This document shows positions 36,553-60,356 of a DNA stretch of 64,000 nucleotides, piece by piece. The translations under genes were made by a program, and so were the position numbers. The notes beneath the pieces are model-generated. The model was not told the DNA's origin. It did no database searches and saw nothing but the letters and a program-made list of their open reading frames with translations. How positions within the stretch are numbered: the first letter of the stretch is position 1; every line of letters begins with the position of its first letter. Source of the stretch: Lepidodermella squamata (lineage: Eukaryota; Animalia; Gastrotricha); NCBI GenBank assembly GCA_047495785.1, contig JBLDXI010000013.1:1240001-1304000 (forward strand), given 5' to 3'.

Positions 36553-39500
36553 CTACGGATAATGACCCCTTTCATCCTGCTGAATCTGCTGCTTGAAGAA
36601 CTGCTTCGCCTGGCGCCGTTCCGTCTCGTAGGCCGGTATCACTTCGTAACAGTCGGTTAGCACCTCGATAACGGTTTCATGCAAGTTTTTGCGCATTGTT
36701 GCCAAGTGTTGGCCTAGAGTGTGGTCCAAATTAGGCAGGGCCTGGAAGTGATACAGCGCATGCTTGTTTCGAAGCTCCTCCGCCAACAACGCCGTATGTT
36801 GGAAATGCACAGTATCTGAAATTTGTGGAAAACATTAAAAATACGGCTCGAAAAAACTTGGGAAATACGAACCATCAGATAAGCCATGGATAACAAAAAG
36901 CTGGTGCAGCTTCAGGTTGCTCAAAATATCCTTGGAATCACCGATTCTGATGGAGGCATCGTAATATGCATCTGTATTTTCGAGCCATAAACCGAGATGT
37001 CGTTCGGTGAAGGTCGAATCTAAAAATTTCAATTAAATCAAGATTTTCGGGTGTTTTTCGACTTACAATGAAGCCGCCATTGAATGATAGGAGCTACAGC
37101 TATGCTACAACGAACTGCGGTTTGCTCCCCCACCGCCAGTTTCGTAGCTAAATAGCCACCGTAGTCGTAACCGAAGACAGCTGTTTTCCGCTTCTCGACG
37201 AAGTTGTACATCTTCTGAAAGTATTCAACAGCCTTCAACTGGTCTTGAAGTTCGTAATGGCCAAGCCGTTTGTACACGGCCTGTTCGTAGACCAGACCCT
37301 GGCCGAAAGTGCCTCGACCGTCGATTTTCACCGAAACAACACCCATCGCAGCTGAGAGGAAGTATTCAAGTGACAGCTTGAATTGCAGGGTGTTTGCAGA
37401 CGACTGCGGCTCATTGTCGACGATTAGCAGCAGCGGGAAAGCGAAGACGTGCTTACGATTTATCTGCGGCGAAAATAGGATCCGGGCCCAGGCTGTTTGT
37501 TGCAGTTGCGGGTTGCTCGAAGTTCGATTCAGTTCGATTTTATGCCACTCAACGATGGGTAATGATCGATTGTTGTAGAGCTCTCGCAACTGCTCATTCC
37601 CCTCTAGAGTATGGACTAGCTCAGGGGTGACAGTCGAGTTGGCGATAACTAGCCGGTAAATTGCGGAAAAAGGCACTCCGATTGGCACCATATGAGGTTG
37701 ATTGTAGTGAGGCGACTCTTTGTCGAGCGGCGCTTCGCAGTGGTAGAGGATGAGTGGCGAAACCCCAGCGTAGACGTTATTCAACGAGAATTCAGCGCGG
37801 CCGTACATGCAGTCAAACTGGCACGAGATGCAAACCAGCGAACTGCAGTCTCGGTAGTCAGGATGGGACGCGTAGACATTGACAGCGTACAAATTCCTCA
37901 TACGCGTGTCGCTCATCGAGTCATTATCAGCAGCCGCCATGAAGTACAGCAAGTTGTTGACGGCGTCGAAATGCACGATTTCTTGCACGTCGAACTGGCC
38001 ACAGGCCTGCAAAACCGGCGCCATGTCGCCGCCGCCGATTGAAAAGGCCGTTCTCAACGCCTTCGGCAGCAAGTAGATCTGCCGAAATGCTTGAATGCTG
38101 GTCATCGACGGCCAAATCATGAATGTTGCCTCGCCAAAGTTGAGGAAACTCAACCTCGGCAGCCAGGAACCGCCAGCCGGAGCACGCTGGGCGAGCGGGA
38201 ACGGCATTTCACCCCCTCGCCAAGAATTCGGGTGGGCGAATTGATAACGAAAAACGGTGCTTTGATTCTGGAAACGGTTTTGACACGTCATCAGAACTGA
38301 GGATGAGTTGATCCACGTGACTGACGTCAAATAGGCGCAGGGTGACCCGGGCGCCCCGCCCAACGGAGCACCCGGCGATGGGAAGATCCTTTCCAGCTTT
38401 TTCGGGTCATTCTGCTCGCGATTTGTGTCGACTATCATAACTTCAAAGGTCGGTATGTGCTTTATCGACTCCTTGTGCCCTGCTTTCGGATAGTGAACCT
38501 GGCGCTGGCATGAGAATATGTCCTCTGGGTAGTAGAATGGCACGGAGAAAGACGGCACCTCCGTGTCGTTGAATACTGCAAATACCAAGAATCGAGAATC
38601 TGGCGACCACCAGATGGCGTTGTCAGTCTTTAGCAAATCCTCTTCGTAGAGCCAATCCGGGATCCCAGCGTAGACAACATCGCGTTGCCCACGGAAAACT
38701 TCGACAGGAACCGTAGTAAACGGAGCTTCGACAAAGTACAAAATGTCATCGGCATGGAAGGCGATTTTCGATTCGCTAGGTGACCAAACGGCGAATCGAA
38801 GCTGAGATCGATCGTTGAAAAATTTCGCCAGGTCTTGCGGGACATTCGGCGCGGTTGGCGGTGTTCCAGTTGGGAAAGCACTGTAAAAAAAATCGGTAAA
38901 TTTGCACGTGGAAGTTTACGATGATGAAAACAGTCTATAGAAGTGTTAAATTCAGGGCAAGCGAAATCGATAAAAACAGGGCATGACAAAATGATGTGAA
39001 AAAGCAGAATCAAGTGAAGGAAAGCAAGCCTCCAAATATTTCTCTTCAAATTCTACTATTAGCACTCGAATAAAAAATTTCAAAATTCAAGCTTTAAAAT
39101 CACTCGTTTATATATATTGTGATGTGAAAAGCGAATAACGCAGGTAAAAAAAATTACTAGTGTTCTACATGTGAATTCGAGAAAAAGTGATAAATAAAAC
39201 GCTTGTTACTTGTTATCATCATCTTCTTCAACCGGTGCTTTATTTCTAAAAATTTAGGAAAAATTGCATGAAACACAGCATGAAAGTCCTTTTGTTAGTC
39301 TTATGATTATTCCTATATATTGGAGATTTCTAAGCAAAGTTGTTAATATTAACTCCGTTATAGCAATCATAATTTTTAGTTAAGCGCCAATTAACACAGT
39401 AGTAGTATGTTATGTCAAATTTTGGAAAGTCTGCGCCAAGTCGAACTCACACGAAACTACATGAACTTACGCTTCCATAGGCTTTCCATAAGCCGGAATT

Positions 39501-42500
39501 AAAGGGTTATCTCTACAATTTTCGATACACAGGCAGTAGCACAAACATTTCAATAAATACACGAAAATGAAAGCTGATTTTGTTCCCTTTGTTCAGCGTC
39601 GACGACACAAGGGAGGGTAATGAAAGCTGGGGTTGATAATATATGAAGCGAAAATTCGATCTATAACCAACCTGTCATCGCCGAGGGAAGTTATGTAAAA
39701 CTCTGACAACGTTGAGTAGCGATTCAGTTTCCTTGAGCCATATTTCAGCAGGATAAACTGCTCATCCGCTGATATTTTCCAATCAGTAATCGTCGTAGAA
39801 GGCGTGAAAGCCTGAATGTAAATATTTCAAAAACAATAAGATTTTCCTCTATAGTTTTACCAGGGTAGTGTTCCTCATGATGACGGTTGTCGCGTTGTTC
39901 GGTGGCATAGTAAAAGCGACAAGATTGTTGTAGTTATCAAAGTAGGCGAGCCGGTTATCTCTCAGCCACTGGTATCGCTTCGGAACAACGCCGAATTCGT
40001 ACTGAAGGATGTCGCTCATAGTTAGATTCGGCTTTATTTTTGGCAAGTCTTTGCCTGTTGAAAAGAGAAAAATTCGAGGGTTAGCACTAAAATCTGGTCA
40101 GGGCAATCGCAAATGCAATTCGAACATTCAAACAGTTGAACAGCTTGAAAAAATAAACAACGTTAACGTCGACGTCAAATTACAAGCCACCGGCTCGGTG
40201 TATGTCTCTAGTCGTTGTTACATATAAATGGAAAGCTTCAAGTGCAGGGGTAGCACTTTGCAAGAAATGTGTTTGTTAGTAGGGATTTTCTTTGCTCGGC
40301 AGCAAAAGGTCAACAATATGTGATAAAGAGGACAACAAATTTCACGCCACGCAAAATTCAGGAACGGTCCTTAAAATAATTAGATTCGGGTTAGTAGCAA
40401 AGCTTTTCGAAAAATTCGGTGCAAATTAAGAAATTCATCGTGTGAAAACTTAAATTTTTTTTCCATTTAAAAATTGAATTCACAAATATTATAACAACGA
40501 ACACAGTCTATAGCTAAACGATTTTCACTGCCTAAACCTAATTCACTGGACTGTACGCACAAAGTCGATCGATCAAATACAACCACCGAAGGTAAAACAA
40601 CGCTACTATTTTGAAAATTATTTTAGCTTACGAAAGCCGAAACTGCCTTCAGAAGACACGGTGGACGCAGTTGACAGGAGATACAACGACAATATAAACA
40701 ACATTTTATTAGAAAACAGGTAAAATCAATCGACGAGTGAAAAAACATGGCTGAAAATGTCAAAATCTAGGCTAATATTCCTATTCTCGGCATTTCATAT
40801 ACAACTAAACACCCAGTTATACACTCATTACTACCTAAAATATAGATAGCACACTAACATGAACCATTCGACGTAAAAAAAAATCGCGCGCAGAGTGATA
40901 ATATTATAGGGGACAGATAGGATTTTTTGTTCATTCCGTTGTTGCATCGGCATATAACAATGCCGAGCACTTCATTCAGTCAGGAAATGACCTAAAGATG
41001 GTCTAAATGGTTCGATTTGTTTTCCGATCATTCCACAATATTTCGTACCAGGTAACAATTTAGTTGTGATCCGTTCCATAGATGAGAAATTTTGTCAAGA
41101 AATAAGTTCAGAAAAAAGTGGTAAAAAAAGAAAGAAAATCACAGCATTCTTGTTCAGTGAAAGTGGCAATGATAAGAAATGTTCAACACACGAACCACAT
41201 TTAACACGGCTAAAGTGTGCGCCGCCGGGTTTTCGACAGGTTGTCTTACGGGTTTAACATATTCGAAACTTTTTTATTCACATACCACCTATGTCCGTGT
41301 AGTTAATCATCAGTGCGCCAGCTATCTTTCGGATCAACTTTGCGCCGCTCTCTATTTACATCATGAGGGGATGTGGCAAGGTGGTTAAGAAAAACATGGA
41401 AAAAATGTTAGTCACAAGATTAATAATTATGAATCATTTTATATATAAGCAACCTTTGCATGGTACGCAAGCTTTCAAACTCATTTCGTGCAAGCGCGAA
41501 TCAAATGTGCGTCGAAGCACTAAAATAACAGCCCAAATCAATCATCTAACATAATTCAAATTTCTATCCGTTTCAACTCATGCCTATTAACGGCTGATTG
41601 ATATGTACTAGAGACTATAGGATTTACGGCTAATTTTAAAAATTTCGGCTTTAAAAATTCAATCACGACATTGATAAAATATGAGCTTACAAATGAGCGT
41701 GAATGAAAACTTCCGTGAGATGTAAAAAATGTGCACAATCCAACTCCGGAAAATCATGAGAAAATCCGTTAATCAAAAAATCATTCTAGCGGTTAGGTTG
41801 CTTGTACATATGATATTGCAGCAGTATTTTTTAGCATTATATTTGTCTGCGGCTCGAATGAATTTTTCACACCATATTATGGATCAAACCTTTCTCATCC
41901 AAGAAGTTGAAACATAAAAACATACCGAAAAACAGATCTGTCGAATATTAATATCGAATTAGGTTTAATTACTTAGGAAAAGTTAACATTTAGTTGAGTT
42001 AATCGATAGGTTTTGGAAAATCTCAAATCATATAAAATAGCTCTGCCTCGAAAACAACGTCACTGAGTATACATGAATAGTAAGTACTACGGACAGAAAA
42101 AATAAAATTCAGCATGCTATAAATATGGGATAAATATTCTCTGATGCTATACCACCCGAAAAAACCTTGTATAAGTGAAATCGGGAACTTACGAGGCGAG
42201 ACTAGGATGACGGCCAAGATGACACAGCCGACGATTCCAACAATGATGAATAAGGAAATGCATATCCCCTTCCAGTTCTTCTTCTCCGGGCTTTGTCCGA
42301 CCAGTTCCTGAAAAATTCAGATGTTAAGTCGAGGATTAGCAATAACGTGTGAAATATTATAAAACGAAGATCTCAATGATATTTCTAGGTATAAATGTAC
42401 TTCAATATCAGTTAGAGCCGCCACGGCGCCCTCATTTTTAATGTAATTAGTAGCCAGGCGCTTGAACGCCGGGACCTTCAGCAGCCGACGAATGACTTGC

Positions 42501-43418
42501 TCAGGGGGTTCGCCCATTTTTCAGCTGAATTCAGGCGATATACACCGGTGGACAATTTTTGTAGAAAAATATAACTCTCGGTTGACAATAGAAAATAAGG
42601 ACGTCTCGTGTTGTTGCAATCGTAAAATGGCGGCACAAAAATTTATGCTAGCCAGTAATGGGTACTTGATGATTGTCAAATGGCCATTCCGTCTCTCATT
42701 AGAGTGCAAATTTACAGCTCGAGCGTAAATAACAATAAAAAGGCGAAAATCATAAATCGCTAATCGCGAGTTGGGTTTCCGATATGGCTCTTCTAAAGCC
42801 GGACATGAAAAAACAGTAATTCTACACGGCGCAGCTGCAAGCTCATCACACGGCGCGTAAAACCAGCGAAAGCGCTTGTAATGCACGGCATTTTATATGA
42901 AAAATTGATTATCAAACTTGTTATTAGATTGCGTGTGATGTTGGACTTGCGCCGAGAGTGCGCCCACGGCCGCACATGCAGCGCTGGCGTCAACTTCCTC
43001 CCGTGCTAGGGTTTCCTTTTATGCTTTTCTTCCTAAGCGCGCGCGAACTAGCACCCAGTTTTTCGCATAGTATTCCGTGTCATCATAGCTGATTAGCGAC
43101 ATATATCACTCGTATATGCTAAATGACCATATTTAGAAACAATGCTAATCCATCATTTCGGAAACTAAATTGACTGGATAAAAAAAAACAGCTTGACTTA
43201 TACAGTGCCATTAAATCTACATATTGGAGGCGTTCAAATCGATTCTACCAATTAAGCATGCTAAACTCCAGTTCAACTGTATTGGTTTAATGAATGATAG
43301 ATTAATGCTAATATATTACCATATCAGACGATGAAAACATAACAAGTATTAACGTCGAAAAGAAGAAAAGTTTCAAGTTTACCTCTTGATCGTTTGATAT
43401 CGTATCTTCGCCCGACAT
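36553..43418 (-). CDS. DPP6: Inactive dipeptidyl peptidase-like protein (DPP6/DPP10 family, Kv4 auxiliary subunit); isoform using the 43418 first exon
   Basis: Exons 43418-43383, 42307-42193 (ELVGQSPEKKNWKGICISLFIIVGIVGCVILAVILVSP, matching the DPP6/10 ELVG...RNWKGI TM exon), 40054-39861, 39811-39672, 39512-39471, 39245-39210, 38880-37067, 37019-36873 and 36815-36553. Motifs GIPDWLYEED, WWSPD, YPKAG, DGRG and HGLSDDTVHFQH; the nucleophile motif GYDYGG has Ser replaced by Asp, as in DPP6. Orthology is to the DPP6/DPP10 pair. Confidence 0.9.
40632..40704 (-). CDS. DPP6/10-like alternative first exon encoding a signal peptide (bypasses the TM exon)
   Basis: aaaATG MLFILSLYLLSTASTVSSEGSFGF + C|gtaagc; phase 1 matches the acceptor at 40054. 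Confidence 0.6.
42401..42517 (-). CDS. DPP6/10-like alternative first exon (MGEPPEQVIRRLLKVPAFKRLATNYIKNEGAVAALTDIE)
   Basis: ATG, 39 codons, GAA|gtacat in phase 0, 93-nt intron to the ELVG acceptor. Confidence 0.5.
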
Positions 43419-46400
43419 TTTGAATTTTCGAAATTATGATTCAATTTTCAAACAGATGACAAATCTTTCCGGCTTTGATGGAAGCACGGTTCAAGAAGCT
43501 CTCACGATTAAATCACAGCCAAGAGTAAAAGGTGGCTAGACACAGAGATACATCATATAGCGTTCGCTGAAAATAGATGACAAATGAAAATATGGGAGTC
43601 GAGCGCTGCTCATGGATAATGCAATTGCCAGAATTCAAAGCTTATTGTTAGAAGGCAAAGAAGCGAGATTTAACTAGATGTTGTTTACGCGCAGTAGTTT
43701 GCATTTTATCGCAATCATCGCATCATTTTATCTAGTAATGAGTTTTGGATTTTTAATAAATATTTATATTTCGACAGCGGCGCCAGATTTACTGCGATTT
43801 TACTTGTTTTACTTCATCATCGCGATAATGTCGATCAGCCACTAGGCGCGTGGGCGGTCGATCGAGTGCAAAATTGGTATAAACAGCAAACGCTGCGATA
43901 CAGCGCAGACGCAATAATATAGTGGCGAAATTCAATACCAAAGCAGCAGCAAGCATAATGTCATTTCATCACTGTCTCCCGGCGAATAAAGAAAGAAAGA
44001 AAGACAGAATGACGGAGCATTAAATTCTATTGCATTATTATCCTCTAGAATCAGGAAGCTTTTAGCGCTACATATAGCTGATTCTTTATTATATATTGGT
44101 TTCGGCCGGTATCTGACCGCGATCATGGCGCTATAAGGCAAGCACTAAATGAGCGTAAAAATATCGAAAATTTGTCAGGCCGCGGAATGGCGAAAGGCAT
44201 TGCTGATGTCAAGGAGCGGGCGGATATCTTAAAACAAATGTTTTCGCCTATTTTTCAGACACAATAACACCACAAGAGGCGGTGCTAAATTTTTTAACGT
44301 AATATATAATATAACGAAATGAAATTTATTACGCACAATATAAAAGTGGCGATAAATTACAAATGGGATCGCGGATCGATTTATGCTTTTTAAATGAATT
44401 ATATACGGCTAGTATAAGTGAAGCCTGTACTAATACTATAAAGGCCATATCATATCGGATGTAAAAGGGCGCATATAATATTGTCTGATGCTATTGAAAT
44501 GGCAAAAGTGCCGCGCTTGTTGGCGATCGCAGCTTTCAGAAAAATTGCGCGCCATTTCTCCGCGTAAAATAATCATTGATCTCGCCACTATTTTCATCGA
44601 ATTTTCAGCTAGTGCAAGTTTTCTGATTAATTCACACGCGATTCGAATGAAGTGGCCTTGTTAAAATTGAAATAGCTGTGTGATCATGTCAAACAATTGA
44701 GCCCATTGATAACTTTTTGCTCAGGGAAGTAGAGGTTGTAAATTTCCATTTTTGGATGAATATAAGCTGCCGGGAAGCCATAGTACCACGGACATGGTGT
44801 TATGGGTGTAATCACATATATATCAGCGGCGAAAGCAACAAGGCATGCCAAAAAGATGCTCTCAGCTCTCTGATGGGAAAAAAACTTGACGTTCTCATAT
44901 CATGTTGCTCGCAGCGCTGGGCAATGCCTGCTCACTTAAGGCTCTTTATATTCTGATGATGATTTGCGGGTATAAGAGGTTTCATCAATATTAGTTAAAT
45001 ATTATGTTATTATAGGTATAGTGAGAAAAATGTAGAAAAAACAGAGGTCTGAGCGTATATGCAAAAAAATCGGTGCGATATTGGGAAATATTGTTATTAA
45101 AGCCACAGTCGGAAATTGAGCGGGCAAAAGAGCGGAAAGATACCGATATGGTTACGCGGCATTGTAGCTGCCATCATTCGATTTTTTTTCAGGCGTGTTC
45201 TGAAAGCACAGGTATGCGATCTTTCGCTGTTTTTGAAATACTATAGCCTCGAAAAGGCACTTGATTACGCCTGTAATAAAGCTTTATTGGCGTGCGATAT
45301 CGCCATATACACGCAGCTGATGAGAGAGTTGAAATTCAAAACTAGCTTAAATTAGGTTAGTCCTATTCTACTTTTCCACCTGGAAATTTGGTTAATATTG
45401 GCTATTGAAATATGGCGATGCAAGTTAATAAGGCAATACGTGCCTTATCAGGATGAAAAAAACGAAAATATGCTCGTCATTCATCATTCAGGCCTTATAT
45501 AGAGACTAATCCCCATCGCTAATTCGAATACATCACTGTATCGATAACTCGCTGTAATTCCTCTGTGTGAAATAAATTAATCGAGCCGAACTTCGCTATA
45601 ATATGCATATCACTGAATTTACATGAGCCCTGTGTACTGTATATTGATGCTTTCAAGTTAAATGAAAACTATCGATATTTTGTTTACATCCATCATTTGT
45701 CAGAGGATGAAACAGAGAAATCGTAGCTAGTATATAAAACTGACTTTACCTCCATGTGGCGATTTAAGATGTTTCGTTGCTTCTAGCAGATGTTTTTCAT
45801 TTCTTCTAAAGCAGAAATGAAACAATAAATTCGGCCGAAGTAAGGAGACATTGAACCACGCAATTGAACGGTTATCTTATCAAAGGTGTGAAAATCCTAT
45901 TCCGGACAACACTTTGCATCGTACTGAAAAATTTTCCGAGGCGAACGCGGTCCATTTGATTGCCAGAAATAACGATTTGTTATTCCAAAAACCTCGGAAA
46001 AAGTGATAATTAAAATATATGCCACGGCTCTGTGGTATATTTCTACGTCTCACTGGCTGTTTTTCCTCGTTATGTAAGCATACAGAGCAGATGGTTGGAT
46101 CCAGAAAATATAATAATGCTGTCCATAATAGAATTGTTCGTAAAAAAAAACGATGGTTTATATCGGTTTGCATCCATCATGAGTAAAAAAGCAGCGTGAG
46201 AATACGATGATGAGGGCGGCGGATCATTAAGACGCCTTATATAATCAGTGAATTATTATACATTCCGCACCGCTCTCTTGACACAGTCTTTAAAAAATTC
46301 GCGCGTGGCCTTAATGCTCAACGCGCCAATAAATATTATGTAAAACGCAGTATAAAAAAAACTTGCAGAAAAATAAGCGCGCAAAAATAAGCCGCAGGGA

Positions 46401-46620
46401 ATTTCCGCAAAAACTCCCAGCTCATGGTATAATGATGAGGATAAGAAGTCGGCTGTCGTTCTTATGCAAAAAATATATGACACTATAGTGACATGAGGAT
46501 TAAAAAACCAGTTTATATATTGTCAAGACCGAATGAGGCCATCGCTTTTATAGCATGACCAGGCTGAAGGTGTATACAACCAAGAAATTTCCGATACGCA
46601 ATAAAACTCGGAAAACTTAC

Positions 46621-46680
46621 TGATAATTCTTCAGGAGTGAGTTCGGGCGCAACGGAGGCGCCATCGGAGCCTGAATCCAT
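46621..46680 (-). CDS. DPP6/10-like alternative first exon (MDSGSDGASVAPELTPEELS)
   Basis: ATG, 20 codons, TCA|gtaagt in phase 0. Confidence 0.6.
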
Positions 46681-47901
46681 TACGGTTTACGCGATGAAAG
46701 ATGAACCGCCCATTTCAACAACAGAATAAACAAAAATATTGCTTCGATACATAGTACAACCAGGAGGTTGATTAATATTATAAGGGATAAATAGAGCTGT
46801 AATTGGGGTTCTTCCCCCTAAAAATGCAAATCCCACAACTTGGTGACAGACACAAAAGGCAAGGGGCTTGATGGGACTGTCCCAACTTATCGAGCAGGCG
46901 TAAAGCTGTCAATCATTGCGGCTAAATAAGAGCTGTTTTCACCCAGCCTCGGACCATCATCAGAGAAATCGCAACTGTTTGGCGCGTATTTTAGCATCGT
47001 TATCTATAATTTATTAACTTGGAATTAATTAAGCAAAACAATTGCAGACAGCCTAATATTACTTGAAGCCTAGAGAAGCGAGTATAATTCCAAGCCTTCA
47101 TTCTCTTACGGGCGCTAAGCGTGGTTCCTAAAACTGTCACCCCCGGCTAATAGAGACTATGCTGTTGATGCTTATATTTGCTACAAATATCGGCACCATG
47201 CGGCGAGATTCGGATGGGCATGAAAGTAGCGCAGCGGCAGCGGCGGCGACGACGGCGTTTAAATTATTAAATGGATAATTTTATCAACTTCCCTAATACA
47301 GCAACGTCAATAACGTTCATCTTCTTAATTATAATATCGCTATTTTTCGCGATCAATCTCTCATCGCCTATTCTTGGGGGAACTAGGTACGGCAAAGCGA
47401 CCGAGATTCGGACTCTCTGATAGAAATAGGGTGAATTTGACGCGACAGTTAGATCATAATATGGACAGCTGTTCGAGTGGCTGGAAATGTTATCCTAAGT
47501 AGGCATTACTTATAAGGCTATTGTAAAATTATTACGATTACAAAAATATATCGAATTATATGCCGGTTTTTTAGGCTGGCAGTTGTTTTATCTAGAACGC
47601 GATTCGAATCATCGACAAGGAATCAAGTTTAGCGATAACTTCATTACGCCGAAACGTGCACTGGCTAGCAAACAGCTGTTTTACACATTATATAGAGTCG
47701 ATTCTTGCGATCGAAAGTGTACGCCGGCTATTACTTAGTTCCGTATTTTACATCGAAACATCAAGACTCACAGGTGGCGTAGTTTTACGTATTTTACGAC
47801 GCCATCTAACGACAATAAAATAAATAATAACATCCGGCTTTTAACTAGCGGTGGGCAGTTTAGAGTTATGATAACATGCATTTTATATGTTTATGACTTA
47901 C

Positions 47902-48009
47902 CAAATATTCGAGATAGTTAGCGTCGAGTGGAGTCAGCGAGCGGCCTTTTTTGGCCTTCCCCTTCCGAAAGGGGTCTGGCCCGCCGCCACCCGAATTAAC
48001 CGAATACAT
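47902..48009 (-). CDS. DPP6/10-like alternative first exon (MYSVNSGGGGPDPFRKGKAKKGRSLTPLDANYLEYL)
   Basis: ATG, 36 codons, a GC-rich island in AT-rich DNA, TTG|gtaagt in phase 0. Confidence 0.65.
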
Positions 48010-49419
48010 CTCGCCGCCGATTAATATTAAATTTTAAGCAACATTTTGCCGCGTATTCATCATTATAGAATATAAGGTGCAGGCTTGAGACAAAAAATGA
48101 AATAAAATCTGAAAACTATACTCGGTGCATGTAAAATCGCGGATTTATACTTGTGCCGCGACTGAAAATAATAGCATTATCATGATAATTAACACCGAGC
48201 TGCGCATCACTCAACACAAGAAAAGGGTCTTGAAGCTACTCAAGCGTATCGGGGCGCAGTTGCTCCTCGCAAAACATATAGAGATCGCTGCCAGAACCGG
48301 AAACTGTTTGTAGCGCAAAAAACGATAAGAACTAGGCGATGCACCAATTTCTCGCTGATGACAGGATGCGCTGTCGCCAATTTGCGATGCATAACTATCA
48401 TGCTCATTTCAAATATAACCGCTCATTATGCTATCATTAAAGTCGAGGAGAGAGACGCAGTTATTTAGCCGATATTTTATGCATGCCTGCGACGTGTAAG
48501 TTGATTTTTGCTTCGATTCAGTGCGCAGTAAACACGCGACTTGAAATTTGCAAGTGGCTTCCCAACTATAATAAACGTGGACCTAATCGTGAGGCTTCTT
48601 CTGATAAATGCTGGAATTAGAGAGGAAAAACCTTCCCGCGAGAGAATACAGCGGTCATATCGTAGGGTGAGAAACACGTTTCCGCTTGTGTTCTTTTAGG
48701 TCATTGCTTGCAGAGTATACAATCAGAACGGATATATCAAGAAATTGTATTATCATGATATTTCTTATAATTTAATGGGATGGAGAAAAATAGAAATTAT
48801 TCGCTATAATATATTAGCCGATATTTACATATTATAATGCGTTGCCAAGTGATGTGTGACATTTTGTGTCGCCTTCATCCGGAATAATAACACCGAAGCT
48901 TTTAAAGATGGGTGATCCACATCGCGCCGCCTTATATAATCGTATAATTTGCTTTCGCCTTTTTTGACGTTTAGAGTCGCCCGCGTCGCGCACTCACCAA
49001 GGGCAGCCATTTGGTCATTATCGAAATGGGCGTGCATGCAGTGAAACGCGTTCGAAATACGCCGTTTGATTGATTGATTGATTACCGTAAAGTATCTCAT
49101 AATAAGTTATCGGTAAATATTTGCGACAAGAACATCAGATTTTTTTATCAAATTACGACGAATTATATATCAAGCTGGTGTATATTGCGAGTAAAGAGGG
49201 AAAGTTCTCGCAGCCAAGTGAAAAGGCCTATACACCGGTGCGTTATCTCATAAATACAGCCTTGCCATTTAGTGATTTTACGGAAGGTGGCAAGGCTTTA
49301 AACGATGTAAACACCTTCATTTCCTAACGTTTGTTTACGCAACTGTTATAACGTTAGCCCTTTAATCACTCAATTATTTGGCAGCCTGAATGAAAAAAAA
49401 ACGAGTTTTTCAGCCTTAC

Positions 49420-49464
49420 CGAAGCTGTTTCGGAGCTCAAAGGCACTGCTTGTTGGGTATGCAT
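49420..49464 (-). CDS. DPP6/10-like alternative first exon (MHTQQAVPLSSETAS)
   Basis: ATG, 15 codons, TCG|gtaagg in phase 0. Confidence 0.5.
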
Positions 49465-49618
49465 TCCAGCAAATGTTAGCTCGTTTCGGTCGGGTTAGTT
49501 GTGAAAAACAGTTGTTAGTAAATTGTTAATAAAAATTGATGCTAAAACGAAGGGTCATTTTATCAAGCAATATATCAAGATCTATACTCATTTGGATGCC
49601 AAGAATTAAGAAGCTCAC

Positions 49619-49681
49619 CTCTTCGAATTGCCGCATGTATGTCTTTCCCCTGGCTCCACCTTGCTTCACCGAGTGAATCAT
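49619..49681 (-). CDS. DPP6/10-like alternative first exon (MIHSVKQGGARGKTYMRQFEE)
   Basis: ATG, 21 codons, GAG|gtgagc in phase 0. Confidence 0.55.
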
Positions 49682-50047
49682 TTTCAAATTTTGCAGTCTC
49701 GGGAAAATTTAGAAGCGTAGTCTATCAACAAGTGAATCACCTCGCGAGCATATATATAGCTTATTTCCAGACTACAGAATGGCCCAACGCCGTAAAATCG
49801 CTGATAGCAAGAAAAACCATATTTTGGCAATGTTTATGGGTAGAGCAAAATACAAAGCCTTTACAAACCCGTGTTGTAAACGATGATAATTTGTAAATTC
49901 ATTTATATCTGCGCACCAGTTATAACCGAAATATCCGGCATAATAATGCGCCGATATAGCCCGCGATCAACATTCGGGATAATGTTGTGGATGAGAAGTC
50001 GCTTCCAAACAAAGGAATCGCGGTGAAAAATAAGAAAAACTGCTATA

Positions 50048-50227
50048 CAGGGTGGCCAAAAAATTCTGCAGAAGGCGAATTCGATGCGCATAAATTTAAT
50101 GAGGAGTTTCGAGAAATTGAGGAGTTCCATTGGCAAAAGAATGTTTAAAATTCATCAACTTCTTAAAACTCCTCATTAAATTGATGCGCATCAAATTCGC
50201 CTTCTGCAGAATTTTTTGGCCACCCTG
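50048..50227. mobile_element. Tc1/mariner-type MITE (180 bp)
   Basis: Near-perfect TIRs of about 70 bp beginning CAGGGTGGCCAAAAAATTCTGCAGAAGGCGAATT, TA on both flanks, short non-coding core. Confidence 0.9.
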
Positions 50228-52274
50228 TATATTAGAGAAGGAATCACCAGAGACAGATATTCAACTGAGCTTGATGTATAAATCTCGAAAAAAGCGGGTT
50301 AAAAATTAGGGTAAAACTAATTTGAGTCCCCTCAAAAATAAGATGTAGAGATGTAAAAGGCAAATGTCAAATGGCGAAAAAACGCAGAAAAAATGGGTAG
50401 GCGCTAATATTTTTTTAGTCAGCGAAAATGTGGTTTTAGCACGGGAGTGAGAAAAAACCGCAAAAAATGTCGTTGAGGGAAATATCCTTATGGTGTGAAA
50501 GCTGACGCCTGATTTCATTTTTCTATTGTCATCCCATTTTTCTACGAGTCATTGACTTTTGCTATATGGGTATATGGTGTTTATCTAAAACATTTTGATC
50601 ACATTGAGATATACGGCGATGATTGGTAAAAGTGCGTAACTTTCTCTAAGATGAGGAATCGGCCGAATAATATCGGAGAAGAAGTACTGATTCCGGCATG
50701 AAAATAGCGCAAAAGTATTGCGAATAAATTAATAATAATAATTGCCTTAGCCGTAGTTTTACTTTTCAGCCATGGGCTTTAGATTCCTATCATATTTCAC
50801 ACGGTGGCATCGAAACTACGAATAAGCGGCTCTGAAAAAACTTGAGTCACTCATGCGGGCTTATTCGGTTTCTCATTTTCTATCCGGGCCGAAATTCAAT
50901 ACGAGATGTTTTCTGCTGTAATTTTCGGTCACATTATTTTAAATACATCATGCGGCAAGACCTACTACTACTATTAAGTAAGGCGCCAACTTATGGGTTA
51001 CAACATAATAGTAATGCCATAGCCAATGTATATTACTTTGATCGCGTTTTCTTTTCGCCTTAGATGCCACTCGGGTGTTTTTATTAAAATAATAATAATA
51101 ATAGTGTGTATCTATTATGCGCAAAATGCAAAATTCAGTCAATTGTTTGCGGTTTCATCATTAAATATGTATATGGTCACTTCCCAACTACTGGTCTTGC
51201 TCTGAAATAATTGCTACAGCACTGAAGACTCGTTCGATAGACGCCGCTGCGATCAATTTTGCCCCATTTTAAGCCGTGAAGCAAGGCGAATCCCAATCAG
51301 GGTTAATAGCGGTTACAATTAAAAACTTTCGAATGTTATTCGAATGTAAAGAAAACCAGATAGCCGTATCTGTTGACGAGAGAAACAATGTAAAAATGAA
51401 TCGACCGTGACGCGTCTAAGTAAACTGCTGGTTTCAAACCACTACTGAAATTCATCGATTGTTTGCCCGCATAAAATCGGTCCAGATAAAAAATTCGCAG
51501 TAAAAATATGGCTGCCTATCCGCTCTTTAATTCAATCCACCACAGCTATATGTCGAGTAGTGACTTAATACCTTTTATTATACCTGGCAAAAAATGGTCA
51601 ATAATATCGATGTCCGATGCCAGTGATAGAATGCGAATTAAAAAAAACAGAGGCATTTACTAAGGGAATAAAGTTGGCTTTTATACGAATAATGAGATGT
51701 CAGGAAAAATTGGCAAGCCATTTACTTCCTATTTAATATATAAAAAAATAATTTAGCAAATAAATAGGTGAAAATCCATGCTAAATTATACGTTCGACAA
51801 TAATTCAATGAATACCTAAGGGCCATACACTTATCGGCATCAAGGCATGGCAAAAATCGACTGATGGACACTTGAAAAATGCGCTGTGACTTATACGCTC
51901 ACGACTTATTCATAATAATTAGCACTGACAAATAGGTATAGGTATTATATATGTGTATTCAAATAAAAAGTTGCCAGCGGCACACACAAGAGTGGAGACA
52001 TTTTTTACGCTTCCGAAGTAATTTGCGCTCAAGTTCCTGTTTTCTAATGTGCGCAAACCGCCGCGGAAAGAGCGAAGTTCCTATATGAGCAACTATAGTT
52101 TCCTCGATATGTATGAGCCCTAGCAATCATAGGTACAGGGTTTTATTTAACTGACCAGGATACCAACGCTGAATTGACCACTCGGCAGCACGCAATTTAA
52201 TTTGCAAATTAGTAAGAATAAAATTGGATAATTACACGTCAACTCCAGAATAAGTTCAGCAATATAACACTGAC

Positions 52275-52370
52275 CTCTTCTTCCGTCTTAATTCGCCTGC
52301 CTTTCCGGTCCCTATCCATGGCGAGTTTCATCGCAGGATCGTCGTCTTTGTTCGCTGACCAGTCTGTCAT
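52275..52370 (-). CDS. DPP6/10-like alternative first exon (MTDWSANKDDDPAMKLAMDRDRKGRRIKTEEE)
   Basis: ATG, 32 codons, GAG|gtcagt in phase 0. Confidence 0.65.
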
Positions 52371-55263
52371 TGCTTGTGATCACGAAAAAGGTTACAAATC
52401 GAAATCTGCCGAGTTCAAAGAGTTCGCAATTGGCTTCCTAATAGTCAGCAAAATTGTATGTACTTCAGGTGCAACATGTTTTTCACACCATTGATGGCTA
52501 TTCATGGTGGCTGAAAGGAGGGGCTTTCAAAGTGACGAGCAGCGGCATAGTGTAGAACCCGCTCTACATTCTTTCAGCATCTTTTTTCAGAAATATTGTC
52601 TTACAAAACGGTTGTCGGAATTCTCAGCTTGTATTTTTCATTCATCATTGAGTTCAGCCTGAAAGAGAAACATAATTGGCAGGTTTGGGCACAAAAGTGG
52701 ACCAATTAGAATCGTAAGCAAACAACCTTGTCGACAATCCGTAGAGTTTTTCGAAAACTTGGTTCCTATTTCAAAGGGAGAATTAGCCAAAAACCGATTG
52801 CTCGTGCTGCTGCGAATGCGAATCAAACTGGCCTGAAGTAGCCGTTAAATTCAAGGAACAATCTCAATGAATCATTTCCAGAATTTACTACCGAATTTTT
52901 ATTCAAGTTCAGGTTGACGATATAGGTAATAAATGAACATCAGTGATTGCCCGTATTTTTTGGTTCAACCTTATGGCAGACATCCAAGAAAATTTGGCAT
53001 CAGCTGAGTTCAGCATACGTTATGACTGATACCTACGGTCAGAGCTGGCGAGGCACCGCGTGTGAACCCCCTCCCCCCTCCCCAACATTAAGAGATTGAC
53101 AATGTCGCCGGTGTAGTTAATTTTTTATGGTGTTTACGAGAGGAATGAAAGAATCATAACAAAACGGCGAAATTGATCGGAAATGACGCAAATTACGCGT
53201 TAATAACGGTGACACAATGCGACCGGCCGGAGTTTGCGCTGCAACCAGATAAATAGTACTGTAGTATACAATGAGCAGAGGCTGTTTTTTACTCGAATAT
53301 AAAAAACGAAATACCTGACTTGCTGCAACATTAGGAAAAATTTATTGTAATTTGCTAGTTTTTTATATTATGTTGCCCTCGCGTCCTCATTTATTCCCAT
53401 TTATTTGGATCCCCATACGGTATTTTTCACGCTCAAGTGTCATCATTATTTTACGCGGATGGTAAAAGATATTATCAGTATCCAAGTACTGGATAGTAAT
53501 ATCTTGGCTCAATAAACGAACACATAATTCGATTTTGACATTCCGCCCCGAATAATATAAGTATTAAGTATGACTCGTTAGATTCTGAAGCAGAGTGAAA
53601 TTTTCTCATCTTCGATAAATTATTACTCCATATTGACGAGTGTGTAATAAAAGCCAAAATAAAGGGCATCGATTTATATTTTCCTGTTTGATCGCTTCCT
53701 CAGAGCTGAGAGAAGCGATAAAAGCATTCATTACGAGCGCGACAGGTTAGGAAACTCGGGAAATTTTGCCTTCACTTCAGTTAGTTATTAAAGGATGGAT
53801 AAGCACTCGATTTTTTACTTATAGTATTTCCTCAATGACATCGGTCACTAGACAAAACTTTCTGATATTACTTGCATCAGATAGATCAATTACTGCTTTT
53901 TTTAGAATAGTAACCTTATAGGACTAATCCTTATTCTCGTTTTTACCGATACCACTATTATGAATGCTGAGAGCTGATAATCGATAGGTGCTATTCACCG
54001 CGCCATGAGTCTTATGTACACCGCCCAGGCAAGCGTCAAACATTTCCTGCACCCTCGAATAGTTTGTCCCTCTCACTTGCGCAGCATTAGTGACGCCATA
54101 AAACTCATTAAATTAATTCACGCTCGTACTATACGTAAAAAAGTGGTCGGAAATATGCAGATCAAAGTTTTTACGACCCGTAAATTTTTTTGAATTGAAT
54201 TCGTGTGGAGTGAAAACCCCACATCAAATCAAGAATTCCGCTAGTTTTTCTCTTCACCTCACCTATGTAGTCAGCGTATCGCATGTATTTTTGCCATTTT
54301 TTCTTCGATTGTTTCTCTACCCATCAAGCTGCAAACTGCTGTAAATGAGGTCATGCGTATCTTCAAAGCATCAAAAGAGTAGGTATAGTATTTGAATGGA
54401 TTGTCTGCGCATAAATCTAGCAGGCTTTTTATGTGTGAGGAATGACTCTCATCCAAGGATTTTTCTCGTCTAATCATAAGTCTTTTGTTCAGTTTCTAGA
54501 TGAAATTCAAGATTTTATTTCCACTCTCAAGAAAATGTACGTTGAAGGTAATAGCGTCAAATTGGCTGAAGATATGCACGTTTTTGGCAAATTCTTGCTA
54601 GCCTTTTTTTGCTTATCTTTCATCCTATTATCTTTCTTCCAAGCCACATGCCATCGAAAAAGCTTGGGCCAAAAAAATCTGGATATAATTCTATTATTTA
54701 TTATTATTGGCGAGATTCTCGACCCGTCTATTTACACTATAGGCCACTTTTCGCGATGGTGTAAGTATAGTGGGGATATAATTACCGAATCGCTGAGAAC
54801 CGACCGTTTGTAACAATTCACCGCCGGCAAAAACGCAGGATGTTTGCAGCCCTAATGAAATCGGAAACAATAACTTTCGATGGAAAAGCACAAGACGGCT
54901 CACGTTTGATGTTTTCGTCGAACAAATAAATACCTAATAGCGATTACGCCATCATATTACTCATTGAAGCAAAAAACCGCTTGTAACCCCCACGTTTTTT
55001 TCGGACTCATCTGCTATTTCGCATTAGCATTCATTATACTGAATAACGCGCGTGTTACAAAGCGGCGTGCAGAAAAGGGCACGTCGGTATATTCTATACT
55101 TTGAAAGGCCATGCTAATCCATAAGTATCATCTAGAAATTCCCTTCATGGAGGTAAAATTGTCGACTAGCATTCGACTATATTTCTGCTGTGCCCATGTC
55201 ACAAAAATTAAATGGCGACCTTTTTTCTTTGTTTCCTATTCGAGTTGATGTCTCAGCAATTAC

Positions 55264-55299
55264 CTCGTTATCGCGTTGTTTTCCGAATTTCCATCTCAT
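55264..55299 (-). CDS. DPP6/10-like most distal alternative first exon (MRWKFGKQRDNE)
   Basis: ATG, 12 codons, GAG|gtaatt in phase 0; lies head-to-head with the ankyrin gene at 55757. Confidence 0.5.
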
Positions 55300-55756
55300 T
55301 ACGCCTCGTTGGTGACCTGATTCAGCCGCAAATTATTTTGCATCGATATCATCCTGTTCATAAGAATCCTGTGCCATATTGATGTTGGGCGGGAAAACAA
55401 AATTACAACGGCGGTAAAAATGTTAAGAGCGTATGGACTCGACTTCCGTAGTTTGTTTTTATGACCGAAGATAGATTTCCGCATCAATTCTGTTGCTATT
55501 CTTCGCTTTCCACATGTGCGTTGCTTCTCCTATTCTCAAGGTGCAGCGCGCAATTTTTTTCCTATTACACATCCGTGTATGTTTTCTTATCTAGGATGCG
55601 CAAAAACATCGAGACATTTGTTATGCCGACGTAAGATCAATGATGCTATGTTATTCCACTAAGACGATATACACCTGTCAAACTCATGCGTTGAATTGTA
55701 TTATGGATTTTTTTAGACGGTACATACGTTTAAAATAATGTTGATAATCTAAGATT

Positions 55757-56628
55757 ATGAGTCGACGTGCTTCGGTTATTCAGCGCCAAAACCCGGAGAG
55801 CGCGAAAAAGAGCGTTCGCTTTCCGACGGAGCTTGTTTTCTTAGAATCGCTCAAGGACAATGACCTTGACCAGGCAGCTGGTATGCTCAGGCGCGCTAGT
55901 TTAAGGTTAGATATCAACGCTATTGCTGATTCAGGTAAATTCAATCGGCCTTGCGATATGGGAGAAAATATTTCAGTATTTTTGCAGGTCTTACTCCCTT
56001 ACATCAAGCAGTAATCAACGAAAATTTACCAGCAATCCGGTTGCTCATCAACCACGGCGCCGATGTGAATGCTCGCGATGAAGACTCCTGGACACCATTA
56101 CATGCGGCAGCAGCGGTGGGCAGTGCGGAGATAATTAAGCTGTTACTGTTGAACGGTGCTGACCCCACAGCGACGACTATTTTCGACGAACGGCCAGTTG
56201 ATCTTTGCGATAGTGAAGACATCGCCGCGATCGGTGTTCTACTGGAAGCTCTCAAGAAGCAGAAAAACCCGAAAACGCCAGGGGGGAAGAAGGCGCTCGC
56301 AAAGACTAACTCACTCTCGCCAGGGCCGCAACGCCGGTCAACCGACGATGGCTCTCTAGCAAAATCCCGCGACCTCACTCGTTCGACAAACGGTAATGTT
56401 CTACCGTCGACAACCTTTTATAGCAACAGTTATTCAACAGTAAAAAACTTCTTTTCCTCTTCTAAAACCAATAGCTCTGGTAACGCCAGCAGCCAGACTG
56501 GTCCAACCGTTCTAAAAAAAGTATCGTCTGCGAAAAGCTTTAGTAAAAGTGAGCAAATCTTGCCGTTAGCTAATGCTAACAGTAACTCTAATAGCCCCGA
56601 TCGGACTAACAGTAGCAAACGCAAATAG
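55757..56628 (+). CDS. PPP1R27: PP1 regulatory subunit with RVxF motif and ankyrin repeats (PPP1R27-like)
   Basis: Exons 55757-55934 and 55988-56628; KSVRFP..VFLE...NDL, SGLTPLHQAV, GADVNARDEDSWTPLHAA and a Ser-rich tail. Confidence 0.75.
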
Positions 56629-57449
56629 AAACCCCTAACTTGGTTTCCGGCTATTTTGAGACCCATGCCTCATCCCACCTATGCTGTAGACATCCTATTC
56701 ATTTTCTCACACTATGTTCCTGGTGTAAAGATATTTGACGTGCTACTAAACTGCACTGGCCACTTCGGTGGTTGAGTTGGAGCGATTATGCAATTGTAGC
56801 CATCGATTTTCCACGTCTTACTAAGATAGAGGACCTTATTTCTGATCGGTATTTGCATGTTTCTTCGTTCGTTTAGACACGAATTCCTGTCTTTTCTATA
56901 GCAACGTGTGACCCCGACATGACTGTTTCTGCTCTGTTTTACAAGCATATTCCATTACTTTCCAACCACTGCATTGGTTAACCTGATTTTTGTTTCATCA
57001 TATGCTTAGAGCGACGTTGATCGATGCAGTATTTTTACATTTTAAGAATTGAAAATACATTTATGTATGGTTTATGAGTTATTTATATTTGATCTAGTGG
57101 CAATATTCATATATACTTTTACAAATTTGATCGCGATAATATGAAGCCTGTCATATAAATGTGTTCATCTGTTTGATATTCATTGAAATGGTAATAAAAT
57201 GAAAGGAAAACAACCATGCGAATCTCAGAGCAGTGTTCATTCGTGTTTATTTATTGTTTCATTTTCTATGTTTTGAACTTCATCCAAGTCTTTACGAACA
57301 GCAAGTTCCATTCATTATGACACGATAATACGTAATTATATCACAAGTTAATAACCAGCGATAACTATCTAATAGTATACAGCGCAATATTTGGTAACCA
57401 AGCGATATGGAGCATTCTAAGGAATTCAATATAAAACGCATCTAAGAGT

Positions 57450-58466
57450 CTATTCCTCATCGCCGGCCGGGGCTTCATCCGACGCCTGTTGACCATCGGC
57501 TTCAGGGGCGGGAGCTTCGCCAGACTCCTCTGTCGTGGGCTGCTGCGCTTCTGGTTCTGTCACTGCAACCTGATCACCGTCGAGAGCCTTTGCGAGATCG
57601 GCATTAGCGTCACCAGCCGCATCAGCTTCTAGCAAAAGATCAGCATTGCTATCTGCCACAGCTTGCTCCTCTGCGAGAGTTTCCGGCATATAGTCGATGC
57701 CGCTTATTTCGGTTATATGGTTTGCCTTCCATTTGGAGACCATTTTCGGCTCGGCCTCTTCGTCAACTTCCTCGACAGCCTTTTCGGGAACACTGATGTA
57801 CTCGCCGTGCTGTTCGCAGCCAATGTCAAATACGTATTTTCCCCTTCCCTCGGGTCTGTTTGAAGTCCAGTTGCCGACGTACTTATGGTTCGCATGAATC
57901 AATTCAGCGGGACCCGCCATTTTACCCTCTTTCCATAAACCAACGTATTTGCTGCCAGTCTGCGCCCAGGTGTAGGTGCCATGACCATGACGAAGATGAG
58001 ACAACCATTCACCTTCATATATATCTCCATTGATGTAATAATATTTGCCGAAGCCTCCACGCTGGCCCTCAACCCACATGCCTTCGTATTTTGAGCCGTC
58101 GGGGTAAATCATCAAACCTTGGCCGTGCTTCTTTCCTTTGTAGTATTCGCCCATGTATCTAGATCCATTTTTAAACCTAAAAATGACACATTCGCTGTAT
58201 TTCAGCAACTTGAGAGCAAGTTTGCAGATACTTACCGATACATTCCTTGACCATGACGCTTGCCATTTTCGTACATACCGTCATAAATGTCCTTGTTAGG
58301 TAAACGCGCTCTTCCGCGTCCATGCCGCTCGTCGCGTTCATTGCGTTCACCTTCATACTCCTGGGTTAAAAGATCCAAGAATAAAAGATAATACTTCAAC
58401 ACTGTCCGTACTTACTCCCAAGTCCTGTCCCGCCTCCTCTTCGAGCTCACTCTCCACTTCAGACAT
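57450..58466 (-). CDS. RSPH1: Radial spoke head protein 1 (MORN repeats)
   Basis: Exons 58466-58416, 58360-58236 and 58176-57450; [34 protein letters not shown] repeats, [15 protein letters not shown] and an acidic tail. Confidence 0.95.
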
Positions 58467-58723
58467 TATTACAAGGATAAGAGCTAAAGAAAGAAAAAGC
58501 TATGCTTCAAAATCAATATCAATGCAATCGGAGTAAATATCAATCGGTTCGAAGAGCAACGCTAACCGAAGATGCACTGATTATAACAGTTATCGACTAG
58601 GTATATCGAATCAAATCTCAGTTGAAAAATTTCCGCGATAGGGCGGACTAATGTAATCGCCAACTGCCACTCCGAAGAATAACACGCGAATTGACACTGC
58701 AGAGAGCTTGTTGAAGCGACGCC

Positions 58724-58736
58724 GTTGCTATGCAAC
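58724..58736. promoter_or_regulatory. RFX X-box in a bidirectional promoter
   Basis: GTTGCTATGCAAC, a near-consensus X-box between the divergent RSPH1 and DNAAF8-like genes. Confidence 0.75.
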
Positions 58737-59312
58737 TACTTTGACACATAATATTAAAAAACAATAAGTTTAAATTTACGTAAGCATATAAATTCAAAAT
58801 CTACATTTTTTACTTTTCTGGCAACAAGCGTCCTTCGATATGTTTTTCTTTAGATGGTCGGGATATGCATTACCTGATGATGGTGCGTCGTACGCTGTAA
58901 GAATGCATTATGTGGGGTGGGGAAGTCTTAGACGAAAATCAACCGCAAGCACATCGACGGAATACGGACTGAAGATGTAAACAAACAATGCAGAGATAAA
59001 ACCTCGTCGAGTTGCTGAGTATCTGCGGAATCATGGATTAGTCAAGATCTATATCGTCCATATGGAAAGAAAGTACGCGAAATTTAGGGGTTCCCAAACG
59101 TTTTAACGCGAGCCGTCTGTGCATGTTTATTTGTAGTGTGAGAAAATGAGACTTACCGCACGTCCATCGTTGGCAGATTGATACAGCTCCCATAACATCG
59201 CCAGCCTATCCACAACCTCATATTTCATGCCATCTTTCAGACAAGTGAATTGAGACAATCGATACTTCTACCTGATACTTTTCCTATTTGCACCTTAGAA
59301 TATTTACTGATA

Positions 59313-60356
59313 ATGGAAAATCTCTCGAGGCAACTGGAGTCACTTTTTCTTGACTTGCAGAGTAAACTGCCATCCTTCGATGACATGCCAGATACTGTTG
59401 GCGATGATTTGGAGACATTGGAAGCAGCTTATCCGTCTTACTATCGTGATCTCAACCTTGGCGACGATTTCGATCTCGCGGCGCTAGATTTTTCATCACC
59501 ACGTCAGCCTGATATATCATCGCCATCATTACTGTCTCCTCGTAATAACAATGAGCAAATTAATCCCGAGCCGAGACCATCCATTGATTCAATCGATAGC
59601 GAAGATATGTCACCAAATTCATATGATGCAGAACAAGGCTCTGCTTCATTTGTTCCTGTGCTTCACGACCGTGCTATGATTGCTTCCTTGTTTCCAACTA
59701 GCTCAACCACAAATCAAGGCTTATCAAGGTCTCAGCTTGAAAGTCAGGATCTCGTAGAAAGATATTTCCCATCTAGTGGAATTCAGCTATCTTCTGCGGG
59801 ATTGGACACTGAGGATTTTGACCGTATTTTAGAAAGTTTGGAAGAGCAATTTGAATTAGCAGACATTGGTTCTTCGGGATCTCATGTCGCTGATGCTATT
59901 TTTGACTCACAGCAGACACTACTCACGGGACCTGACAACGGCACAGCCGTTATTTTGGAGAAGTTGATTTTACACGCTGCTAAGTATGATGAGGGACTAA
60001 AAGTCAAAGACTTCGATTTGAAAAATGGTTCGCTCAAGGCAAATAAACGCATCAGTCATAAACAAGCTCGCCGAGAAAAAATCCCGCCCCTATCTCATTC
60101 TCAAGAATGCTGGACAGATGAGCCGCTACCGAACGTTAATTCTTGCTCCAAAGGCGTATCAGCTAGTTTTCCTCTCGAAGACAACGATTTGGCTTTGTTG
60201 ACTGGCATCAATCCCGAAAGAGCACCGGATCCTCCAACTGTTCGCGTTGACCTGAGGCTTGACGAACAAAAATTGGAGGAAAAAAGACGTCATGTCAGAC
60301 GTATTCAATCTATCCTGGGAATTCCGTTGCAGGGCAACGACGATGACAGCGACTGA
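59313..60356 (+). CDS. DNAAF8: Acidic protein resembling dynein axonemal assembly factor 8 (C16orf71/Daap1)
   Basis: Four short blocks are collinear with recalled human C16orf71: LQSKLPSFD ~ VKDQLPSLD, LSSAGLDTEDFDRILESL ~ LSLQQLEAWDLDDILQSL, ILEKLILH ~ LMEQLALL and PPTVRVDLR ~ SPTIFIDLR. It shares an X-box promoter with RSPH1. Confidence 0.6.
   Translation: MENLSRQLESLFLDLQSKLPSFDDMPDTVGDDLETLEAAYPSYYRDLNLGDDFDLAALDFSSPRQPDISSPSLLSPRNNNEQINPEPRPSIDSIDSEDMSPNSYDAEQGSASFVPVLHDRAMIASLFPTSSTTNQGLSRSQLESQDLVERYFPSSGIQLSSAGLDTEDFDRILESLEEQFELADIGSSGSHVADAIFDSQQTLLTGPDNGTAVILEKLILHAAKYDEGLKVKDFDLKNGSLKANKRISHKQARREKIPPLSHSQECWTDEPLPNVNSCSKGVSASFPLEDNDLALLTGINPERAPDPPTVRVDLRLDEQKLEEKRRHVRRIQSILGIPLQGNDDDSD

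Follow-up and report, generated by a model that had tools for sequence, protein, structure and literature searches.

The mammalian genes for DPP6 and DPP10 possess five and four alternative first exons, respectively, which give their products variable cytoplasmic N-termini (PMC3973911). These variable N-termini set the speed of Kv4 inactivation and the neurons in which it is tuned (PMC3973911). Exon 1a, used in DPP6a and DPP10a, encodes 20 residues with a conserved cysteine, Cys-13, and provides a pore-blocking N-terminus (PMC3968176). Here we describe a DPP6-like gene on the minus strand of a 64,000-nucleotide (nt) stretch of DNA from the gastrotrich Lepidodermella squamata (contig JBLDXI010000013.1, positions 1,240,001 to 1,304,000), which is referred to as the window and to which all coordinates refer unless a contig is named. 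The first constant exon of the gene, which encodes a juxtamembrane segment and a transmembrane (TM) helix, begins at the same motif, ELVG, as the constant part of human DPP6. It is preceded by a first coding exon, E1, that is conserved in a relative, and RNA contigs show a second start, which bypasses the TM exon. The 13 kilobases (kb) upstream of E1 may contain several further first exons.

The large exon of the gene, at 37041-38915 on the minus strand, encodes a DPPIV N-terminal beta-propeller followed by the start of an S9 alpha/beta-hydrolase domain. The corresponding Pfam matches, at 37038-38741, are to DPPIV_N (PF00930, E = 2.1e-35) and Peptidase_S9 (PF00326, E = 2e-18). The best matches to the large exon in the PDB are the DPP6 chains of Kv4-KChIP-DPP6 complexes (167 bits), followed by FAP, DPP4, and DPP10. 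DPP4 (CD26) and FAP have the same fold and are the best solved matches of the stretch around the nucleophile, but DPP6 outranks them over the whole exon. They also differ at the nucleophile site itself, which reads avfGYDYGGyl here, whereas FAP has aiwGWSYGGyv with an active serine, so that an aspartate replaces the catalytic residue of the GxSxG motif. DPP6 itself has an aspartate at this position. The gene is predicted to encode a type II membrane protein of the DPP6 kind that has lost catalytic activity. The initial annotation had called the gene DPP6/10-like, and the two domains, the rank of DPP6 among the PDB matches, and the alignment of the TM exon to human DPP6 described below all agree with that assignment. 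The nearest protein found by a word search is P0001 from the ENA metagenomes, which is 72% identical to the large exon. A scan of JGI metagenomes returned only secreted DPP4-like mRNAs, 25% identical and devoid of the ELVG motif.

The constant exon at 42193-42307 has a length of 115 nt and encodes ELVGQSPEKKNWKG and the TM helix. Its acceptor, tttttcag/GAACTGG (the slash marks the exon boundary here and below), is located at 42308/42307, the exon thereafter reads ELVGQSPEKKNWKGICISLFIIVGIVGCVILAVILVSP, and its donor at 42193, C/GTAAGT, is in phase 1. All 38 of its 38 residues could be aligned with the human DPP6 chains 7ukg_I and 7w6t_I (E = 1.6e-5), and the alignment begins exactly at ELVG. 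The human counterpart corresponds to residues 18-55 and 76-113 in the two chains, which differ in N-terminal length, with 17 and 75 residues ahead of ELVG; this difference agrees with human isoforms that are variable up to this point and constant from it onward. The proposal that the alternative first exons of mammalian DPP6 and DPP10 join at this position is borne out by the alignment together with the published exon structure (PMC3973911). The exon is also present in the relative and in a contig of an RNA-like sequencing run, as detailed below, and a word search for transcript-derived proteins containing it gave no candidate. The gastrotrich gene thus shares with mammalian DPP6 and DPP10 the DPPIV_N and S9 fold, the loss of the nucleophile serine, ELVG at the start of the constant exon, and type II topology, which is reflected in the ELVG..P..NWKG juxtamembrane motif and the TM helix that open the first constant exon.

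E1 (MGEPPEQVIRRLLKVPAFKRLATNYIKNEGAVAALTDIE) is located at 42401-42517 and ends in phase 0 at the donor GAA/GTACAT. It is separated from the TM exon by the 93-nt intron 1 (42308-42400), which contains an in-frame TGA at 42319-42317. In the relative, contig L002 contains at positions 232-345 a 38-codon ATG exon, MEDTDRTIKRLLKVAGFRKLAENYIKNEGAVAALNEIE, that ends at GAA/GTCATT and is followed by a 91-nt intron and by cag/GAATTGG, which opens ELVGQSPEKKNWKG. Since 91 is not a multiple of three, the intron of the relative has to be spliced out to hold the frame. In both species, E1 closes in glutamate (Glu) ahead of a weak donor, and the junction Glu/GT ... cag/GAA is common to both. Among the 38 aligned codons of E1, 10 are identical, 15 show synonymous differences only, and 13 encode another residue; the corresponding numbers for the TM exon are 17, 16, and 5. 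The comparison with the 72%-identical relative indicates purifying selection on both E1 and the TM exon. On this comparative evidence, E1 is the sole validated upstream first exon and is predicted to be spliced in phase 0 onto the ELVG exon. For the proximal exon, the conservation in a related species to which the initial annotation had looked was found, as E1 is kept as a coding sequence beside the same ELVG exon.

An unpaired acceptor, gaattcag, is located 7 nt ahead of the ATG of E1, and several known genes of the window likewise have one within 50 nt. About 400 nt upstream of the ATG, near the end of the RNA-like read depth, there is a GC-rich (guanine plus cytosine) block at 42920-43079, which may be the E1 promoter. 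Run X2, a DNA run with flat depth, contains two alleles of intron 1 at 42340-42390, with five base differences and one inserted base in 51 nt. No difference is seen in the X2 contig that covers the adjoining 5.7 kb upstream, though variants may have collapsed in the contigs.

Sequencing runs were compared with the gene over one 6,000-letter stretch, 42100-48099, at the level of contigs. Run X1 behaves as spliced RNA: from the TM-exon donor at 42193/42192, three of its contigs continue into 40054 (following letters at 40053-40024) and one into 41351 (41351-41322). Position 40054 opens the first exon that is common to the TM and signal-peptide forms (39861-40054, minus strand), which is kept in the relative (L002:2357-2548). 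A loose end in X1, in which GGCAGTTTCGGCTTTC is directly followed by GCAAAGACTTGCCA, corresponds to a splice from 40632 to 40054 that removes an intron with gt..ag borders. The ATG exon at 40632-40704 on the minus strand (MLFILSLYLLSTASTVSSEGSFGF), which is signal-peptide-like and ends in phase 1, is used as a second start that skips the TM exon. It is positioned downstream of the TM exon, outside the region covered by the initial annotation. The signal-peptide start would give rise to a secreted DPP6-like form. The other target of the TM-exon donor extends from 41351, after aaatag, to approximately 41290 on the minus strand. It meets an in-frame TGA about 24 codons from its start, and the frame is broken at its possible donors, which makes it either a poison exon or an alternative end.

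The deepest X1 contig, with a depth of 39.6, covers 42213-42324; it takes in the TM exon and 17 nt of intron 1 and shows no junction at 42307. On E1 there is a contig at 42461-42512 with a depth of about 4.6, and the depth over intron 1 is 0-3.3. The unseen upstream partner of most TM-exon RNA could be explained by an internal start, by the loss of a spliced leader, or by the way in which contigs are built. The building of contigs may clip short dead-end branches, which would remove alternative first exons in particular. Farther upstream, short X1 contigs with depths of 2-7, all labelled 'opposite strands', are located at 43.7-44.5, 45.3-45.4, 45.83-46.06, and 46.39-46.54 kb, with none on 42900-43699 or 46700-48099. 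They represent either low-level transcription or background.

The initial annotation described E1 and the region upstream of it as an array of about eight alternative first exons feeding the TM exon, plus a weaker two-codon unit. All nine minus-strand units have the properties ascribed to them: each begins with an ATG, has an open frame and a length divisible by three, and is followed by GT directly after a whole codon. The phase 0 of all nine fits the ELVG acceptor at 42307. Six of the nine close in GAA or GAG, counting the two-codon unit, which agrees with the predominance of Glu ends noted initially. The eight distal units, all on the minus strand, are candidates of unequal strength. The better tier is formed by 52275-52370 (32 codons ending in TEEE, GAG/GTCAGT), which has the top distal score of 7.4-9.9 bits; 47902-48009 (36 codons, TTG/GTAAGT), with 5.5-8.4 bits and the best of its six frames; and 49619-49681 (21 codons ending in QFEE, GAG/GTGAGC), with 3.7-5.3 bits and clearly the best of its six frames. 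The first and third of these have Glu-end donors. The middle tier contains 46621-46680 (20 codons, TCA/GTAAGT, 3.5-5.1 bits), for which two other frames score equally, and 49420-49464 (15 codons, TCG/GTAAGG, 2.4-3.6 bits), for which an antisense frame scores alike. Two 12-codon units with Glu-end donors are weak, 43383-43418 (ending in NDQE, GAG/GTAAAC) with 1.4-2.3 bits and 55264-55299 (ending in RDNE, GAG/GTAATT) with a score of about 0. The latter is located 458 nt from the ATG of a divergent ankyrin gene, a position that would suit a two-way promoter. The two-codon unit ME/GTAAAG at 45750-45755 is doubtful and too short to score; X1 contigs at 45834-46057 lie 80-300 nt upstream of it and stop short of it.

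The local GC content is 0.51-0.55 at the units starting at 46680, 48009, 49464, 49681, and 52370, which are GC-rich like E1 in a region with a content of 0.39. The 12-codon units at 43418 (0.44) and 55299 (0.42) are not enriched. The unit at 48009-47902 coincides with one of the six GC-rich blocks of 42-56 kb; known exons account for two of the six. Three blocks, 42920-43079, 47140-47259, and 52960-53119, have contents of 0.54-0.60 and no assigned role. Enumeration yielded one further Glu-end phase-0 unit, 43956-43813, which is hydrophobic, has a coding score of about -4, and was rejected as non-coding.

Two kinds of enrichment hint at coding exons among the distal units. ATG frames of at least 10 codons that close at GTRAG, GTAAN, or GTNAGT were listed exhaustively on both strands and in all phases. 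When these were scored with a codon log-odds table derived from the window's own genes, 6 of the 18 units in minus-strand phase 0 exceeded the cut of 2.5 bits, compared to 2 of 63 in the other five classes (Mann-Whitney p 0.002-0.005 for minus-strand phase 0 against all other classes, and 0.07-0.09 against phases 1 and 2 of the minus strand). With a second, curated codon table, built from homology-supported frames only, 4-6 of 19 units pass at 1-3 bits against at most 5 of 66, and two against none do so at 4-5 bits; the Fisher p is 0.008-0.05 for all thresholds between 1 and 5 bits. The phase-0 enrichment is not explained by strand composition, as the triplet scores average -0.184 for the minus strand and -0.189 for the plus strand. 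The second enrichment concerns glutamate codons at donors. The minus strand of 42530-55400 contains seven GAR triplets followed by a consensus-like GT, compared to 1.34±1.15 in shuffled sequences, and none of 2000 shuffles reaches seven. The plus strand has three such sites, and the remaining 51 kb of the window have seven on their minus strand (about 0.14 per kb). Six of the seven close a phase-0 ATG frame, where 25-33% would be expected (binomial p 0.006); an upstream in-frame ATG with no intervening stop is available at about a quarter of all positions.

The region is the 5' part of a DPP6-like gene whose protein is of the kind that serves in vertebrates as an auxiliary subunit of Kv4 (Shal) channels. 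E1 encodes a 39-residue cytoplasmic N-terminus, spliced, by the comparative evidence, in phase 0 onto 42307-42193, and the joining of 40704-40632 to 40054 in RNA would produce a secreted form that lacks the TM exon. In the arrangement that we propose, and which we consider evenly poised between right and wrong, the 13 kb upstream would hold several further first exons with their own start sites, each spliced in phase 0 onto 42307 and each placing a different short cytoplasmic N-terminus ahead of ELVG. The likeliest of these would be 52370-52275, 48009-47902, and 49681-49619, followed by 46680-46621 and 49464-49420; 43418-43383 and 55299-55264 are possible, and 45755-45750 is doubtful. That three or more of the distal exons are real is about as probable as the opposite. 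The fuller picture, with at least six alternative first exons, most of them placing a glutamate before ELVG, a single phase-0 acceptor where human DPP6 becomes constant, and a secreted form in addition, is tentative, and we place it somewhat short of an even chance.

The inferred architecture is that of mammalian DPP6 and DPP10, with alternative promoters and first exons, not that of a paralogous protocadherin or UGT1 array. As in the mammalian genes, a variable cytoplasmic N-terminus would come from a separate first exon; the gastrotrich gene differs in having a single validated upstream first exon, with the candidates confined to 13 kb. The candidates also bear no resemblance to the mammalian exon 1a with its 20 residues and Cys-13. 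None of the nine candidate peptides contains a cysteine, the feature of the DPP6a and DPP10a inactivation exon, and the suggestion that these inactivation N-termini serve as a model for the gastrotrich ones found no matching candidate. In protocadherin and UGT1A arrays, the variable exons are long and paralogous, and related promoter elements accompany them. If the candidate exons are real, the locus would have in common with such arrays the tandem first exons that feed one constant acceptor, a likeness of layout only; the units here are 2-39 codons long, mutually unrelated, and have no repeated element. No direct-repeat family was found in 42308-55800 (seed 11, minimum length 25), and the peptides appeared unrelated on reading. 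The 60 nt ahead of each ATG contain no common motif, though short degenerate motifs could still escape detection. The comparison with protocadherin and UGT1 made in the initial annotation accordingly fails on direct repeats, paralogy, and a common upstream element. AG acceptors ahead of the candidate ATGs, which could have indicated the use of a spliced leader, follow no consistent pattern.

The proposal of several distal first exons has to be weighed against an explanation by chance, in which E1 and the signal-peptide exon are the only real starts, and the distal units are fortuitous matches in a regulatory or intergenic region or in a long outron between divergent genes. The enrichments would then be small-number flukes sharpened by thresholds set after the fact. 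We regard this explanation as a serious one, although somewhat short of an even chance, and a number of results speak for it and against further exons. Unique pairs of a phase-0 ATG frame and a donor on the minus strand of 42308-55400 were counted and compared with shuffled sequences and with the other phases. For any GT, there are 153 such pairs in phase 0, against 153.7±15.5 in shuffles and 120 and 141 in phases 1 and 2; for GTRAG donors, the numbers are 6, 3.4±1.9, and 2 and 6, and for a loose donor pattern, 38, 25.6±5.5, and 18 and 37. The plain count of phase-0 units from ATG to GT is therefore at chance level, and the excess over shuffles and other phases by which the array could have been recognised did not emerge. 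The difference in coding scores between minus-strand phase 0 and phases 1 and 2 of the same strand alone is weak (p about 0.06-0.1), the score thresholds were picked after the candidates had been seen, and the plus strand has local coding-like peaks that are equally high. The real exons of the DPP6-like gene score 1-14 bits, little above the best antisense and off-frame stretches, which makes the codon test low-powered. The Glu result is not significant when taken as one of 19 residues tried, unless the conserved glutamate of E1 is accepted as a prior reason, and the non-coding score of the unit at 43956-43813, which is among the six in-phase Glu sites, shows that Glu-end phase-0 units do arise by chance. 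The candidates share neither mutual similarity nor an upstream element. The relative offers no help upstream of E1, as its DPP contigs end 231 nt (L002) and 295 nt (L003) upstream of this exon, and L001 ends inside the gene. From the other side, the order of an ankyrin gene (PPP1R16/27-like), a MORN gene, an unnamed gene, and a POU-homeobox gene is kept between 55757-63300 of the window and 9741-14900 of contig L012 of the relative; the 9.7 kb upstream of ankyrin in L012 contain other genes and no sequence that aligns with 42.5-55.7 kb, so that synteny breaks exactly there.

The RNA-like run also favours the chance explanation on its face. The stretch compared with the reads contains four of the distal candidates, and those starting at 49464, 49681, 52370, and 55299 lie outside it. 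X1 has zero depth on 43418-43383 and 48009-47902 and no contig on 45755-45750 or 46680-46621, and neither a joint nor a loose end at the acceptor 42307. Junctions from the TM exon and the signal-peptide exon are present in X1, whereas none leads into 42307. This silence, however, extends to the junction from the conserved E1 and consequently says little about the distal ones. Other results speak against chance, namely the concentration of coding-like units in minus-strand phase 0, the excess of Glu/GT sites and their coupling to in-phase ATG frames, and the 13-kb gene-free stretch, which is unusual in the window. Another explanation, which we consider improbable, is that some units are exons of other minus-strand small or non-coding transcripts, or untranslated leaders, that do not feed the ELVG exon. 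It could account for the patchy, low-depth X1 contigs at 43.7-46.54 kb, which lie off the candidate exons, and for the GC-rich blocks to which no role is assigned. However, these X1 patches are at the level of intron 1 and may be background, a separate gene would have no need of phase 0, where the enrichment is nevertheless at its strongest, and the region upstream of the TM exon contains no Pfam-scale frame and, in scans of 39-57 kb, no Rfam family or tRNA. Of the array of about eight exons put forward initially, E1 stands as a conserved exon, and the distal units have statistical hints in their favour and no RNA junction in X1.

The sole repeat-type feature found in the region is a hairpin at 50040-50235, with 83-nt arms that are 92% complementary and a 22-nt loop. 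Its predicted fold has an energy of -128 kcal/mol (z -23 relative to shuffles), and the window contains no second copy. The hairpin may represent a foldback element or a locus that gives rise to hairpin RNA. The genes downstream of the DPP6-like gene differ between the two species, with a choline transporter in the relative and trypsin and CAP genes here.

If the proximal exon alone is real, the locus would be a gene of an ordinary kind whose upstream region is long. If the proposed distal first exons are real, the layout already known from mammalian DPP6 and DPP10 would be present in a distant animal with a compact genome. The gastrotrich protein is a putative partner of Kv4/Shal channels, by analogy with vertebrates, and its N-termini may affect A-type currents, as extrapolated from the mammalian proteins. 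Given such a set of first exons, the boundary at ELVG, and with it the strategy of combining many N-termini with one core, would predate the protostome-deuterostome split, and the N-terminal diversification of this Kv4 auxiliary subunit would be ancient, not a vertebrate elaboration.

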